Origin: Piromyces finnis finn
Taxonomy: Eukaryota; Fungi; Neocallimastigomycota
DNA: 64,000 bases
NCBI GenBank assembly: GCA_002104945.1
Contig: MCFH01000003.1
Location: 744,001 to 808,000, forward strand
Direction of reading: 5' to 3'
Part shown: positions 35,121-64,000 of the stretch, piece by piece
Position numbering within the stretch: position 1 is the first letter of the stretch
Layout of the letters: the number at the start of each line of letters is the position of its first letter
Program-made: the position numbers and the translations under genes
Notes under the pieces: generated by a model
What the model was told of the DNA's origin: nothing
The model's input: the letters and a program-made list of their open reading frames with translations, nothing else
The model's database searches: none

Positions 35121-38100
35121 TTAGACTCCTTGAGGGAATCTAGGATAACAATGAGAGTAATAATCACTTATGAATTTACAATATGAGTTTGCACTTTGAC
35201 AGCAAGTTGGACCAGTCCAATCTTTACCACCACATTGACCATAATCAACTGCACAATTTGTTGGAGTCGAAGTAGTTCTAGTAGTTGTAGTAGTTCTAGT
35301 AGTTGTAGTAGTTCTTGTGGTTGTAGTAGTTCTTGTGGTTGTAATTGTTGTTGTTTTTGATTTTGTTGTTGTATTTGTAGTGGTTTTAGATTTAGTAGTA
35401 GTTGTAATGGAAATAGTAGTTTTAGGTTTAGTGGTGGTAGAAATGGTAGTGGTAGTTTTAGGTTTGGTGGTAGTAGTAGTGGTGGTAGTAGTGGTAGTTT
35501 TATCTGAATTAAATGGAATACCACACCATTCATTATTTTCTATACTCCATGAACCATTTTCATCGGTTTCAACAACTTCAAATTTCTGTTTACAACATTC
35601 ATAACCTATACAAAAATTATTAAAAAATAATTAATATATAAAAAAAATTGTTTGTTAAAGATAAATAATTTTATTATTATTTACCTAAACGTTTAGACCA
35701 ACACTTTTAAATTTTAAGAGTAAATAAATTTTTTTTCAATAATAATAATAATAATAAAAAAAAAAAGTAGGATTAGTTAGTTATATAAAATTATAGGTAT
35801 GGTATATATATTGAGTATATATTATTTTCTCTTATAAAATTATTTATAAAGTGATTATTATCCTTACTTGAGCAGTTTTTTCAAAATAGTAGGGTCCATC
35901 TATAATTTCGTATGTTTCAACATCATAGGAAGCAATAGATAATTTGGTTATTCCATCTTCTACCTTGAAATCTAATATACCAAAAGTGGCACTAAAGGTT
36001 TGACTATTTTGATAAACATAATCCAAATCTTCTTTATAATAATCATAAAGTTTACTACCGGTTGAACAATTAGCGGTAATGTAAAAAGTACCTTTGGGTT
36101 GCTTATAAACTTTATTCTTTTTTATATCACTTACACTGTAGTTATTGTTATCATAGGAAATGAACTTTGAAGCGGTATAGACATGATCATGTCCGTTAAT
36201 CACAAGATCAAATTTATTTTCATAAAATAATTGGGTTAAACATGGACGTAATTCATTGACAATGTAAGGTTCCTTCGAATGGGTTACACCATTACCGTAG
36301 ATATCATGATGAAACATTGCAATACGCCAATCAACGTCTGGATATTTTTTTATGGCCTTTTCAATTACATTGGAAAAATCTTCACAATACCCGTAGTTCG
36401 TTTCGAGAACAACGACAAGAACATTATGATGTCTAAAGAAATAATTATATCCCGGAATTAAATCTTGGTATTTGGGGTCGGTGTAGGAATTTGGTGAATT
36501 AAAATGTTTTCTAAAATTATTATTACTAGCATCATGATTACCAACTGCAGCAGCGACAGGTACAGATTTTAATAAATCTGGAAGAAGAAAAGCTGAATAT
36601 TGCATTTCTTCATTCAAAAGTTCCATGGGTCCTTTTTCATTATCTTCCAAGTGTTTACATTCTTCATCGGCTTGATCCCCAGCACTAAGTAGGAGACTTG
36701 GTTTATTTGCAAATTCAAAAGATCTAGAAATAGTTCTATTCCAATTGAATGCGTCATTTCTATTACCTTCATTCAACGTGAGAACCCTTTCATAATTATT
36801 GGTGATGGAAAAACGATCGTGAGAACCTCCAATTTGAGGATCACCAACAAATACAAATTTAAAATTGTAAGGATCACGCGTTTTAAGCTTAATGACTGGT
36901 TTTTCCCATTCTCCATTTAATAATCGTTGATAGTAATAAACGGTGTTTGGTTTTAAATCTTCAATGGTTACTTTGTTAGAATAGTATTGTGTTCCATTTA
37001 ATTTATAATGTTGTTCAAAATAACCGTCATATTGCACGGCATCACTCATGTCTTTATTGACACTATATCTTATGGAAGGTAGTGTTTTAGTAGTGGAATA
37101 CCATCCAAAATTAAGTTTAGTTTCATCTTCACCTGGAAATACAGAAAGACGTTCAAAATCTTTTTTAAACTCTTTATCCCATTTAACTTTAAAGGCTTCC
37201 CATTCATTCTTGGTTTCTTTATTCTTTTCACGATCATTCCAGAGTTGAACACTATTCTTCATACCACACCAATTTCCATCTTCATCAAGACCCCTTTTTT
37301 TTATAATAAAATATTATTTTAAAATTTAATAAATATATTTTTTTTTTATTTTATTTATAATTATATATATTTGAAAAAGTCTTGTTAATTTACTTATGTA
37401 ATAATAATTAATAAATAAATAAATAAATGATTTTTACCATTTACCATCTTGGTCACGATAAACAACATTGGTATTTTCTGGAGAACAACATGGAAAACCT
37501 TTTTTTTTTTATTTTAATAATTATAAAAATTATTGATCTATCCTTTTCAATAATAATAATGAAATTTTTATAAAAATAAAAGGTAATTAAAAAAAAAAAA
37601 GTAAAATTCCTACCACCAGCCATAGACCAGCATAAATCAGTTTCTAATTCATTTTTATTACTGACAGCATTAGATGATGCTGAGGAGGTTTGAGCAGGTT
37701 TATTTGTTTTTGTGGTTTCTAAAGCAGTAGTTTTTATATTTTTAACGATACCACACCAATTATCCATATAAACACCCCTTTATTTTATTTTATATATATA
37801 TATATTTAAAAAAAAAAAAAAAAAAAAAAAAAGAATATAAATATTATAAATATACCATATCAATGAATTATTAAAATAAAAATTATTTTATTTTATTTTT
37901 ATTTTATCTATTTACCAATCTCCTTCATCATCTGAATATTGAATTGGCGTTCCTTCCGGACAACTATTTCATCATAAAAAAAAAAAAAAAAAAGTAAAAT
38001 AATAATAATATAAATCTTAATATTTGAATAAATTATTCAATTATTTTATAACTTCAATTTCAATAAAAATTTTACCAAGGATAATTTCCAGAAATAGAAT

Positions 38101-38179
38101 TATTTGACCAACAATTTGAGGTTGCTTTAACATAAATTGTTGTTGTTAACAATAACAAGGCAATAGTGTATTTCTTCAT
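35121..38179 (-). CDS. Secreted dockerin-metallophosphoesterase-CBM1 protein, copy 1 (SP-Doc-Doc-FN3-like/MPE-Doc-linker-CBM1)
   Basis: Signal MKKYTIALLLLTTTIYVKA. Calcineurin-like motifs GDPQIG, SAGDQAD, GNHD, MFHHD and NGHDH lie in one large exon (ORF 35844-37262). Dockerins follow CW..GYxCC...W|G...WCG. CBM1 is NCAVDYGQCGGKDWTGPTCC...YYSHC. Confidence 0.92.
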
Positions 38180-61177: not shown

Positions 61178-62325
61178 AAGAATATACATAAAATTTTTAT
61201 TTTAAATATTGGCAAGACTTTAATTATAATTCGATGATGAGTATTGTGTAAAAAAAGATAGAATCAATCTTTATTTTATAATGAAAATCATAAAGTAGTT
61301 GTTATTGTTTTAACTTTTTTTTTACAAAAGGTTAACTTTAAAAAATTTTGGAATATTCTTTTAAAAAACTTTTTAAAAACTTTGTTTCCAATTAATCCTT
61401 TTTTTTTTTTTACTAGAGATAAGTCGTTTGGTGTGTGGGATGGTTTATTTTTTTTATTTTACTTCATTCCCATTAAAAAAAAATAAATATTAACCTAACC
61501 TAGATTTATTGTCTTTTTTTTTTTATTCATAGTTATAGTTTTTTTTTTTTTTTTTTTTTTTTTTTTTTTTTTTTTTTTTTTTTTTGAAACTTTATCGGTA
61601 TATGTCCACCTATCAAATTATGAATAACTTTTAATTAAAAAAAATAACCGGCAAATACTTCCTAAAAGTTGGAATTTAGAAAGAATTAAAAGGCTTTATT
61701 TTTTAATAATAATAAATATCGGCGAAATATATTCCTAAAGTTGAAGTTTAAAGTTCCGATAAAATTAATATTAAAAAAAAAAAACCTTACAATCCCTTTT
61801 TGCATTGTTTAATCACGATATTTTTTTTTTTTTGAGACACCATTAAATCTTTATAAATCTTTATTTTTATTAACAATTTTTTATTTATATTTAAATTATT
61901 TATATTTATATGATTTATATGATTTATATTATATATATTATATATATATTATATATATCTTTTTTTTTTTTTTATTCTATTCTCATATTATTTTACCTTG
62001 AAATGATAAAATAGAGAAATAAAAAATTTTTTTTTGATTATTTATAATTAAATAATTATAGATATAATTATTATTTATTTATTTACTTTAGTGTATAATG
62101 TGTATGTGTGTGTGGAGGTGCACGATATTATGTGTAAAAGGATTTCTTTTTTTTTTTTAACATTAAAAAAAATTTAGACTTTTTTTTTTCCTTTTCATTT
62201 TATTTTTAAACAGAATTTAATTATTTACTTATAATAAAAAAGTTGATTTTTTTTTTTACAATGAAGCTTTAATATTTATAGATATTTATATATTTATATA
62301 ATACTACTATTTCTTTTTTTTTTTT

Positions 62326-64000
62326 TTAATAATAGTTGTTGTTGTTATTGTTATAATTGTTATTATTATTGTTATAGTTGTTGTTGTTGTTATTATTATA
62401 ATTGTTATTATTATTGTCATAGTTGTTGTTGTTATAATTGTTATAGTTGTTATTATTATTGTTATAGTTGTTGTTATTGTTATAATTGTTATAGTTGTTA
62501 TTATTATTGTCATAGTTGTTGTTGTTGTTATAATTGTTGTTATTGTTGTTGTTGTTATTATCACTAATTTGAATACATTGATGATAATAATCATTATATA
62601 CTTTACATACAAAGCCTTCTACACAACATGTAGGTCCTTGATAGCCTATACCACCGCATTGGTTAAATGCACTAACACAATTACTAGGTGAAGGTGTAGT
62701 GGTGGTTGTGGTAGTGGTAAAAGTAATAGATGTTGAAGATGGTGTTAAAATTGTTGTGGTTGTTCTAAGAGTTTTAGTAGTTGTAATAATAGGAATGGTT
62801 TTAGTGGTGAGAACTGTTGCAGATGGTGTTGGAATTGGTGTGGACGTGGTAATTATTGTAGTAGTTGTTGAAAGAGTTTTCGTTGTTGTAATGATAGGAA
62901 CGGGTTTAGTAGTAGAAGTTATAGTAATAGTAGAGGTAATGGTAGTAATTGGACTGGCTGATGTAACGGTGGTAGTGGTTGTTGTTGGTAATGTAGATGT
63001 AGTGGTGGTAGTGGTGGTGGTGGTAGTAGTGGTGGTAGTAGTTTCAATGTCAGATGTAGTAATATCAATTGTTGTTGTTGGTTCTTCTTCAATGGTGGTA
63101 GATTCTTCAAGAGTGGTGGTGGTGGTAGTAGGTTCTTCCTCCAAGGTTGTTGTGGTAATGGTATCTTTAATAATACCACACCAATCACCATTTTCAACAC
63201 CCCAATCACCATCACTGTCAGTATAGGCAACTTCAGTTGTTTGGGTACAACATGGATAACCTTGGACTTCTGACCAACATTCTATTGGATTCTCTGGATC
63301 TTCAATAGGATTGATTTCCTTTTCAAAAATGTATGGACCATCCGAGACTTCCATGGAATCTACTTCATAAATCGTAATAGAAAGCATTGTAGTGGTATCC
63401 GTTGTGTTAAAATCCAATACACCAAAAGTGGAACTATACGTTTGATTATACCTATAAACATAATCTCTATTAGGATTAGAGGAGAATCCATAAAGTTTAC
63501 TACCAGTGGAACAATTAGAAGTGATATACAATGTACCATTGACATTTTTATTTACTTCTTCCTTTTTAATGGAAGATACGCCGTAATAACCTTCCATTTG
63601 ATCATTATCCGTACCCTTATAATGAATAAAATTAGAAACGGTGTAAACATGATCATGACCATTAAGTACCAAATCAAAATGATAATGATCCATTAAACGG
63701 GTAAGACATGGACGTAACTTTGAGGTAATATCGGTATCTGATGAATGTGTACTACCATTGCCATAAATATCATGATGGAACATGGCAATACGCCAATTGG
63801 CCTCTGGATACTTGGTGAGGGCTTCCTTAATGACGGTTTCAAAATCGGTACAATCAGAATAGTTGGTTTCGAGAACAACCACAACGACATTATTATATTT
63901 GAAATAATAACTATAACCAGGAATAAATCCTTCCCATCGACTACCCTTCCAACTGTCCTTATAGGATGGGTTGGTAAAGGAATTAGGGGTATTGAAATGA
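62326..64000 (-). CDS. Dockerin-metallophosphoesterase-CBM1 protein, copy 5 (5' part beyond the window), with an Asn/Tyr-rich tail
   Basis: ORF 62326-63882 continues upstream (...[34 protein letters not shown]). It has MFHHD, NGHDH, one dockerin ([11 protein letters not shown]...WCGII), a long T-rich linker, CBM1 and then about 77 N/Y/D residues. Confidence 0.9.

Follow-up and report, generated by a model that had tools for sequence, protein, structure and literature searches.

Dockerin- and CBM1-bearing metallophosphoesterases arrayed in Piromyces finnis, a predicted cellulosomal family with bacterial relatives

In this report we focused on a 64,000-nucleotide stretch of the genome of the anaerobic gut fungus Piromyces finnis (contig MCFH01000003.1, positions 744,001 to 808,000 of the forward strand; hereafter the window, in whose numbering all positions are given) and performed an analysis of a tandem array of five paralogous genes, each encoding a predicted secreted phosphoesterase that carries fungal dockerins on both flanks and a family 1 carbohydrate-binding module (CBM1). 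The main finding is that the catalytic unit of these proteins, predicted to be a binuclear metallophosphoesterase with the fold of purple acid phosphatases (PAP), belongs to a single clade of anaerobic gut fungi whose closest relatives outside the fungi, by sequence and by predicted structure, are all surface proteins of Bacillota, which supports its derivation from bacteria. The complete picture that we propose—acquisition from a bacterium, tethering to the cellulosome and to cellulose, hydrolysis of phosphate esters, and nutrient release as the benefit—is in our judgment the probable one. Plant fibre has few better natural degraders than anaerobic gut fungi, and a considerable part of their dockerin proteins does not belong to the carbohydrate-active enzymes (CAZymes). 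A ten-gene family with arrays across genera and an intact active site thus offers a testable non-CAZyme activity predicted to be located both on the cellulosome and on cellulose.

Results

The array was delineated by a tblastn search of the window with one copy, which found the five paralogs between 35 and 64 kb, all on the minus strand. Their start codons, placed by exon reading and by mapping public gene models onto the DNA, lie at 38179, 44067, 49493, 57669, and 66032, the last one about 2 kb past the end of the window, where it was read in 5 kb of adjoining sequence; start-to-start distances are 5.9, 5.4, 8.2, and 8.4 kb. A search of the whole genome showed that the array consists of exactly five copies and that a sixth is absent from the contig. 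No coding sequence was found in the stretches between copies, and the window is extremely AT-rich, with a G+C content of 13-17% in intergenic DNA and 31-35% in coding exons. The initial annotation had described at least five same-strand paralogs about 6-8 kb apart; strand and number are borne out by tblastn, Pfam, and exon maps, "at least" can be dropped, and the spacing was roughly right, the measured range being 5.4-8.4 kb. The order of modules that it had proposed (signal peptide, two dockerins, catalytic region, one or two dockerins, linker, CBM1) describes paralogs 1-4 but not paralog 5, which has three N-terminal dockerins, while its claim that a catalytic region of about 450 residues sits in one intron-free exon amid intron-dense dockerin exons holds for all the copies.

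Every copy thus has a signal peptide (read directly from the sequence in all five), three to four dockerins, and a CBM1. Paralogs 1, 2, and 4 have two dockerins at the N terminus and one at the C terminus, paralog 3 has two at the C terminus, and paralog 5 has a single C-terminal one after its three N-terminal ones. The fungal dockerin signature CBM_10 (PF02013) scores above its curated cut-off in the C-terminal open reading frames (ORFs) and in two to three stretches each of the public models P0001, P0004, and P0006, from which the Pfam scores for N-terminal dockerins come; in paralogs 3-5 the N-terminal dockerins were identified by reading individual exons. CBM_1 (PF00734) is found in all five copies at 28-48 bits against a cut-off of 20.6, with its four-Cys pattern and aromatic residues, in the C-terminal part of the protein. 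It is a common module here, since the P. finnis genome contains at least 94 of them. From this module content, we predict that the proteins dock onto scaffoldin via their dockerins and attach to cellulose via CBM1. The distribution of introns is equally regular: the catalytic unit, of about 465 residues, occupies one exon in 5/5 copies, while every N-terminal dockerin contains two short introns with GT-AG borders, always at the same places, one after GYP and the other after D/E-W.

The catalytic unit shows the signatures of a metallophosphoesterase. Pfam identifies Pur_ac_phosph_N (PF16656, the FN3-like N domain, hereafter PAP_N), at 34-42 bits against a cut-off of 30, together with Metallophos (PF00149, over its cut-off, E values of 1e-12 to 1e-15) in each of the four catalytic ORFs that are complete in the window, and the genome search finds PF16656 in paralog 5 as well. 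The metal-binding motifs GDPQIG, GDQA[D/E], GNHD, FH[H/Q]D, and GHDH are intact in all five copies. In an alignment of 32 fungal and bacterial members, which was used for reading the motifs, about 48 positions are invariant, including GDPQIG, GDQ, GNH[D/E], the His of F-H-[H/Q]-D, and GHDH; the same alignment shows a second conserved His ten residues past motif IV and several conserved Arg, Lys, and Asn, and in the DxH motif the position of the His is occupied by Gln. At motif II, the five paralogs of the window have GDQA[D/E], fungal copies from elsewhere have GDQ[AIVT][DEN], and the bacterial form is GDQ[IV][NS]. Position equivalence being judged by motif register, the Tyr that defines PAPs (GDxxY) is replaced by Asp/Glu in the window copies and by Asn in bacteria. 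Metallophos_C (PF14008) has no Pfam match in any paralog, and a genome scan for it was blank too, but its control was likewise silent.

The predicted structure leads to the same class. Our AlphaFold2 (AF2) model of the catalytic unit, built from the 32-sequence alignment, has a pLDDT of 88.5 and a pTM of 0.91, and its top Foldseek matches in the PDB are kidney bean PAP, sweet potato PAP, lupin PPD1, and wheat PAP phytase, with template modelling (TM) scores of 0.64-0.70, yet at 15-17% sequence identity. A search of solved structures with a single sequence gave no match, and a profile search reached plant PAPs at an E value of 1e-11; NCBIfam has no model for either the fungal or the bacterial enzyme. 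With these plant-type high-molecular-weight PAPs the family has in common the FN3-like N domain, the calcineurin-like α-β-β-α sandwich, motifs I and III-V, and a conserved His past motif IV at the place of the PAP substrate-binding His. It differs from them by Asp/Glu in place of the GDxxY Tyr, the lack of Metallophos_C, an N-terminal helix (W-N-D-R... W..W.K) and a C-terminal β extension of its own, and the presence of dockerins and CBM1. A lower tier of Foldseek matches, in which the α-β-β-α sandwich is recognized, includes PhoD and also Mre11, 5'-nucleotidase, and Rv0805. PhoD from Bacillus subtilis (2yeq), a secreted bacterial enzyme that likewise has a PAP-like fold without the Tyr ligand, is much more distant than the PAPs (TM 0.51); the PhoD catalytic domain has no Pfam match in the paralogs, and PhoD_N is found, below threshold, in some bacterial relatives only. 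We therefore rejected the assignment as true PAPs, the Tyr ligand being missing in motif II, and classify the enzyme as a predicted PAP-fold binuclear metallophosphoesterase. As a separate observation, the catalytic exons of all five paralogs contain two Cys (in L-R-P-C-L and A-N-C-S) where the bacterial proteins have Thr/Ser-Gln and Ser. These may form a fungus-specific disulfide; the first of the two is absent from the P. finnis copies P0029 and P0055.

The relatives of this catalytic unit outside the gut fungi are bacterial. Among the best 120 matches from a search of 5.8 billion proteins, the top 84 places are taken by anaerobic gut fungi or their metagenome fragments, most of the remainder are bacterial proteins with 35-39% identity over 98% of the domain, the best non-fungal matches are all bacterial, and there are no eukaryotes other than gut fungi. 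A scan of GTDB, with one genome per species, put the family in at least 569 species of bacteria, mainly gut Bacillota, and the best 80 species are nearly all of this kind (Acutalibacteraceae, Lachnospiraceae, Megasphaera, Selenomonadaceae, Lacrimispora, and Christensenella). Predicted structures agree: in the ESM Atlas, the nearest entries (TM scores of 0.88-0.90) come without exception from Bacillota and carry Big_2, SLH, fn3, or Ig-like surface modules, and clusters of plant PAPs rank below them. The fungal and bacterial enzymes thus share the unit of about 465 residues end to end, with the same motifs, and the bacterial ones are extracellular and tethered, as the fungal ones are by prediction. 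What differs is the means of export and anchoring: the bacterial proteins carry a Sec signal peptide, with its cleavage site immediately N-terminal to a conserved T-E-H-W-N-D, LPXTG-like C termini in some cases or Big_2, SLH, or fn3 anchors, and an insert of 20-35 residues, whereas the fungal proteins have dockerins and CBM1, and no insert. The limits of homology are sharp. Similarity begins at the bacterial mature N terminus, which corresponds to the position directly after the last residues of the fungal dockerin, and stops just before the fungal C-terminal linker or dockerin, which indicates that the bacterial parts for export and anchoring were swapped for fungal ones.

The bacterial genes have one constant neighbor. 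In 72/72 loci with enough sequence, the next gene downstream, in the same orientation, encodes a YibE/F membrane protein (PF07907; for example, L062:5881-8721), while any other gene recurs in at most 9/80 bacterial loci, so YibE/F is the sole conserved neighbor. Nucleoside-related genes next to three bacterial loci were considered as a clue to the substrate and rejected as chance, because no gene but YibE/F occurs in more than nine of these 80 loci. The phosphoesterase and YibE/F form a very widespread, uncharacterized two-gene cassette of gut Bacillota, which places the bacterial enzyme in a system of the surface and membrane without naming its substrate. YibE/F is absent from the P. finnis genome. 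It has no NCBIfam model, a profile search of the PDB was blank, and a literature search on its name returned unrelated papers only. An AF2 model (pLDDT 81.7) consists of an N-terminal helix, a small β-barrel, and six helices, and its best likeness, a weak one (E 0.04), is to the membrane halves of resistance-nodulation-division (RND) transporters.

Within the fungi, the family is old. The P. finnis genome contains ten copies—the array of five, a further array with three members on a different contig, and two isolated copies—and all the PAP_N domains in the genome belong to these ten. Among the best 120 matches, members are seen in Piromyces sp. E2, Anaeromyces, Neocallimastix, and Orpinomyces, with several copies per contig in Piromyces sp. 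E2 and Anaeromyces robustus as well. In an unrooted maximum-likelihood tree of 117 catalytic domains (26 fungal and 91 bacterial) made without an outgroup, 26/26 fungal sequences form one clade with a Shimodaira–Hasegawa approximate likelihood ratio test (SH-aLRT) support of 100, on a long stem, which supports a single origin in gut fungi. No canonical eukaryotic PAP that could serve as a root was found in the P. finnis genome, and midpoint rooting makes the fungal clade the sister group of the 91 bacterial sequences sampled, taken together. Paralogs 1-3 of the array cluster together, paralog 2 grouping with orthologs from Piromyces sp. E2, and paralogs 4 and 5 cluster with another gene of that strain. 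Since the five array copies are only 54-60% identical to each other in pairwise comparisons and have orthologs in Piromyces sp. E2, the array is old and not a recent amplification. With all gut-fungal copies in one clade, the best reading is one ancient acquisition followed by duplications that are themselves old. A variant architecture was observed in P0003 (G000:C155:139976-141364, outside the window), in which the N-terminal dockerin region and the catalytic unit are followed not by a C-terminal dockerin and CBM1 but by a predicted transmembrane helix and a low-complexity tail of about 500 residues. P0003, which has an ortholog in Piromyces sp. E2 (P0007), is by this prediction a membrane-anchored variant of the family.

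The gene models deserve a description of their own, as the public ones needed correction. Three public models were mapped to the DNA and the other exons were read directly. Paralog 1 (35121..38179) encodes SP-Doc-linker-Doc-PAP_N-MPE-Doc-Thr linker-CBM1 (SP, signal peptide; Doc, dockerin; MPE, metallophosphoesterase), as established from the exon map of P0006, Pfam, and GT-AG introns, with a catalytic exon at 35868-37292 (catalytic ORF 35844-37262) and a C-terminal exon for dockerin, linker, and CBM1 at 35124-35630; P0006 itself ends within the C-terminal dockerin (35680-35703) and so lacks the CBM1. Paralog 2 (41247..44067; exon map of P0004, Pfam) encodes SP-Doc-Doc-PAP_N-MPE-Pro/Glu linker-Doc-Thr/Pro linker-CBM1, its catalytic exon running from 43340 down to about 41830 (ORF 41811-43361) and its C-terminal exon spanning 41250-41702, and P0004 misses the C-terminal dockerin and CBM1, running instead into an intron (41811-41900). 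Paralog 3 (46531..49493; mapping of P0001, Pfam) encodes SP-Doc-Doc-PAP_N-MPE-Doc-Doc-Thr linker-CBM1, in which a single exon (46531-48555, ORF 46531-48582) runs from the catalytic domain through both C-terminal dockerins and the linker to CBM1. P0001, which is 100% identical to it, begins within the first dockerin, the exon with the signal peptide being missed (49231-49493). Paralog 4 (54593..57669; Pfam and exon reading) encodes SP-Doc-Doc-PAP_N-MPE-Doc-long Thr linker-CBM1, with a catalytic ORF at 55442-56884 or, taken further, 55442-56938, and C-terminal exons at about 55268-55288 and at 54596-55153. Paralog 5 occupies 62326..64000 in the window, its gene extending to 66032, and encodes SP-Doc-Doc-Doc-PAP_N-MPE-Doc-long Thr linker-CBM1, followed by a tail of about 85 residues consisting almost only of Asn and Tyr (62329-62620, minus strand). 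This Asn/Tyr-rich tail may be translated or may reflect a missed intron or stop.

Discussion

The architecture described here is not new, because dockerin-bearing phosphatases have already been listed and the genes are publicly annotated. This answers the suggestion of the initial annotation that it might be undescribed. The P. finnis genes are labeled "Metallo-dependent phosphatase" or "Purple acid phosphatase" in GenBank/UniProt, and homologs in Piromyces sp. E2 are labeled "Non-catalytic module family DOC2" or "carbohydrate-binding module family 1 protein." In Orpinomyces C1A, ten dockerin-bearing "ser/Thr phosphohydrolase" cellulosomal transcripts have been reported, at low to moderate levels (fragments per kilobase of transcript per million mapped reads) in all conditions (PMC4672494), and "phosphatases" are among the dockerin proteins of gut fungi from tortoises and mammals (PMC10978972). 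A literature search found no paper that characterizes the family, names a bacterial origin, or makes the link to YibE/F; a catalogue of horizontal gene transfers (HGT) into anaerobic fungi lists only a "trifunctional nucleotide phosphoesterase," its supplement being without this phosphoesterase family (10.1101/487215), and a survey of fungal acid phosphatases does not mention anaerobic fungi (PMC13390437). Existing knowledge is extended here by a set of corrected gene models, an active site that is not that of PAPs, a two-gene cassette in bacteria, and one ancient origin. As a database name for these proteins, "purple acid phosphatase" is too specific, since they have neither the GDxxY Tyr nor Metallophos_C.

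The family is also an example of a known process, in which a bacterial enzyme is given fungal cellulosome anchors and is then expanded. CBM_10 is the commonest domain gained by bacterial xenologs in this phylum (PMC11291939), a pattern that the swap of bacterial anchors for dockerins fits. Other dockerin-tagged xenologs, such as those of glycoside hydrolase (GH) families and CotH, likewise combine a bacterial domain with CBM_10 and are expanded and arrayed (PMC11291939). The differences are that here the cargo is a phosphoesterase rather than a CAZyme, that dockerins are present on both flanks, and that CBM1 has been added. The proposals made beforehand, that a bacterial-derived phosphoesterase was grafted between native modules and then amplified, fare unequally. 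Derivation is supported by the nearest non-fungal relatives being all Bacillota, and grafting by the homology limits together with the confinement of introns to the dockerin part. Amplification holds for the ten copies in two arrays and two singletons, but not as a recent event. The phylogeny suggested as a check for bacterial nesting gave a strongly supported single fungal clade, but nesting was not shown in what is an unrooted tree.

We propose the following scenario. The catalytic unit would have been gained once, from a gut bacterium, by the ancestor of anaerobic gut fungi, in which the bacterial signal peptide, surface anchor, and YibE/F partner would have been lost, the missing parts being replaced by fungal intron-bearing dockerin modules and CBM1, and tandem duplication would have followed long ago. 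After export, the dockerins would hold the enzyme on scaffoldin and/or CBM1 would hold it on cellulose, where a metal-bridged hydroxide would attack phosphate esters (monoesters, perhaps also diesters) freed as plant cells open. Orthophosphate and a dephosphorylated, importable organic moiety would thus be produced at the fiber surface. Phosphate scavenging is one of several roles that would fit, and we put it forward as a proposal. Five points weigh against this scenario. First, the activity, secretion, and cellulosome binding of all members are predictions. Second, as the Tyr ligand is replaced by Asp/Glu (Asn in bacteria), neither the metal pair nor the pH optimum can be transferred from PAPs to the predicted enzyme. 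Third, the fungal clade has a long branch and does not fall within any bacterial group; because the unrooted tree shows no nesting, the case for the direction of transfer is made by distribution, introns, and operon context. Fourth, saliva supplies rumen fluid with abundant inorganic phosphate, which weakens phosphorus limitation as a driver. Fifth, the homologous transcripts in Orpinomyces are at low levels (PMC4672494).

The enzyme may be less a source of phosphate than a means to obtain the rest of the molecule, with nucleotides and sugar or inositol phosphates being dephosphorylated outside the cell for import as carbon, nitrogen, or salvage substrates, and it is the organic moiety that would be under selection. 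Phosphate esters are unable to cross membranes, and surface phosphatases commonly serve uptake. The coupling of the bacterial gene to a membrane protein in every one of the 72 informative loci would fit such a role, as would the many nucleotide-salvage genes that have been transferred into anaerobic fungi (10.1101/487215). However, the model of that membrane protein has no convincing transporter match, the likeness to RND halves being weak, YibE/F was not taken up by the fungus, and there is no conserved nucleoside transporter close by within the window. We regard selection for the organic moiety as doubtful.

A role in clearing the fiber has a slim chance of being correct. The enzyme would then be a weapon or tool that cuts phosphodiester polymers of fiber-attached bacteria—biofilm DNA, teichoic acids, or phosphorylated capsules—and so clears the surface for the cellulosome. 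Three to four dockerins plus CBM1 would put it on the cellulose surface, which is where bacterial biofilms are, the fungus retains ten paralogs in surroundings that abound in inorganic phosphate, and the fold relatives include diesterases such as lupin PPD1 and PhoD. Yet the sequences give no sign of a polymer-binding groove or of nuclease-type residues, most of the nearest folds among solved structures belong to monoesterases, and a bacterial cassette with a membrane protein looks like uptake or housekeeping rather than attack. We would give similarly long odds to a non-carbohydrate accessory activity in a broader sense, which would cut phosphodiester material that coats or cross-links the fiber, be it biofilm DNA, teichoic acids, or phospholipid bridges between plant membrane and wall. 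If this were true, phosphoesterases would be genuine accessory enzymes of lignocellulose breakdown, originating from a bacterial surface system of metallophosphoesterase and YibE/F.

Two further readings, one that does without bacterial acquisition and one that does without catalysis, are unlikely. The former, in which the family is vertical in fungi or moved from fungi to bacteria, finds a foothold in the midpoint-rooted tree, where the fungal clade is sister to, rather than nested among, the sampled bacteria. It is very hard to reconcile, however, with the lack of any other eukaryote among the best 120 of 5.8 billion proteins, with the presence of the family and its conserved operon partner in at least 569 bacterial species of several Bacillota orders, with an intronless catalytic exon inside intron-rich genes, and with the absence of any further PAP_N-bearing gene in P. 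finnis. The latter, in which the proteins are catalytically dead structural parts of the cellulosome, has a precedent in the many dockerin proteins of anaerobic fungi without a known enzymatic role, such as CotH (PMC4672494), but is scarcely credible, as the metal-ligand motifs and the 48 or so invariant positions have been kept across fungi and bacteria despite 54-60% identity between array copies.

Knowledge of the substrate of these enzymes would tell us if cellulosomes, beyond their known role, gather phosphate or nucleosides or remove barriers other than carbohydrates. The phosphoesterase and YibE/F cassette of gut Bacillota provides another, genetically tractable route to the function.

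Two genes that adjoin the array on the side of paralog 1 complete the picture of the window. A gene at 29062-30646 (minus strand) encodes a signal peptide, three dockerins each followed by a Thr linker, and CBM1, anchoring modules of the kind found in the array, but with no catalytic domain. Its last two dockerin-linker units (29850-29518 and 29463-29065) are near-identical tandem copies, and its product may be a cellulose-anchoring adaptor for the cellulosome. Between this gene and the phosphoesterase array lies a small gene of the glyoxalase/VOC family on the plus strand (33819-34345), with exons at 33819-34058 and 34166-34345; "Glyoxalase I" is among the published bacterial acquisitions of anaerobic fungi (10.1101/487215).

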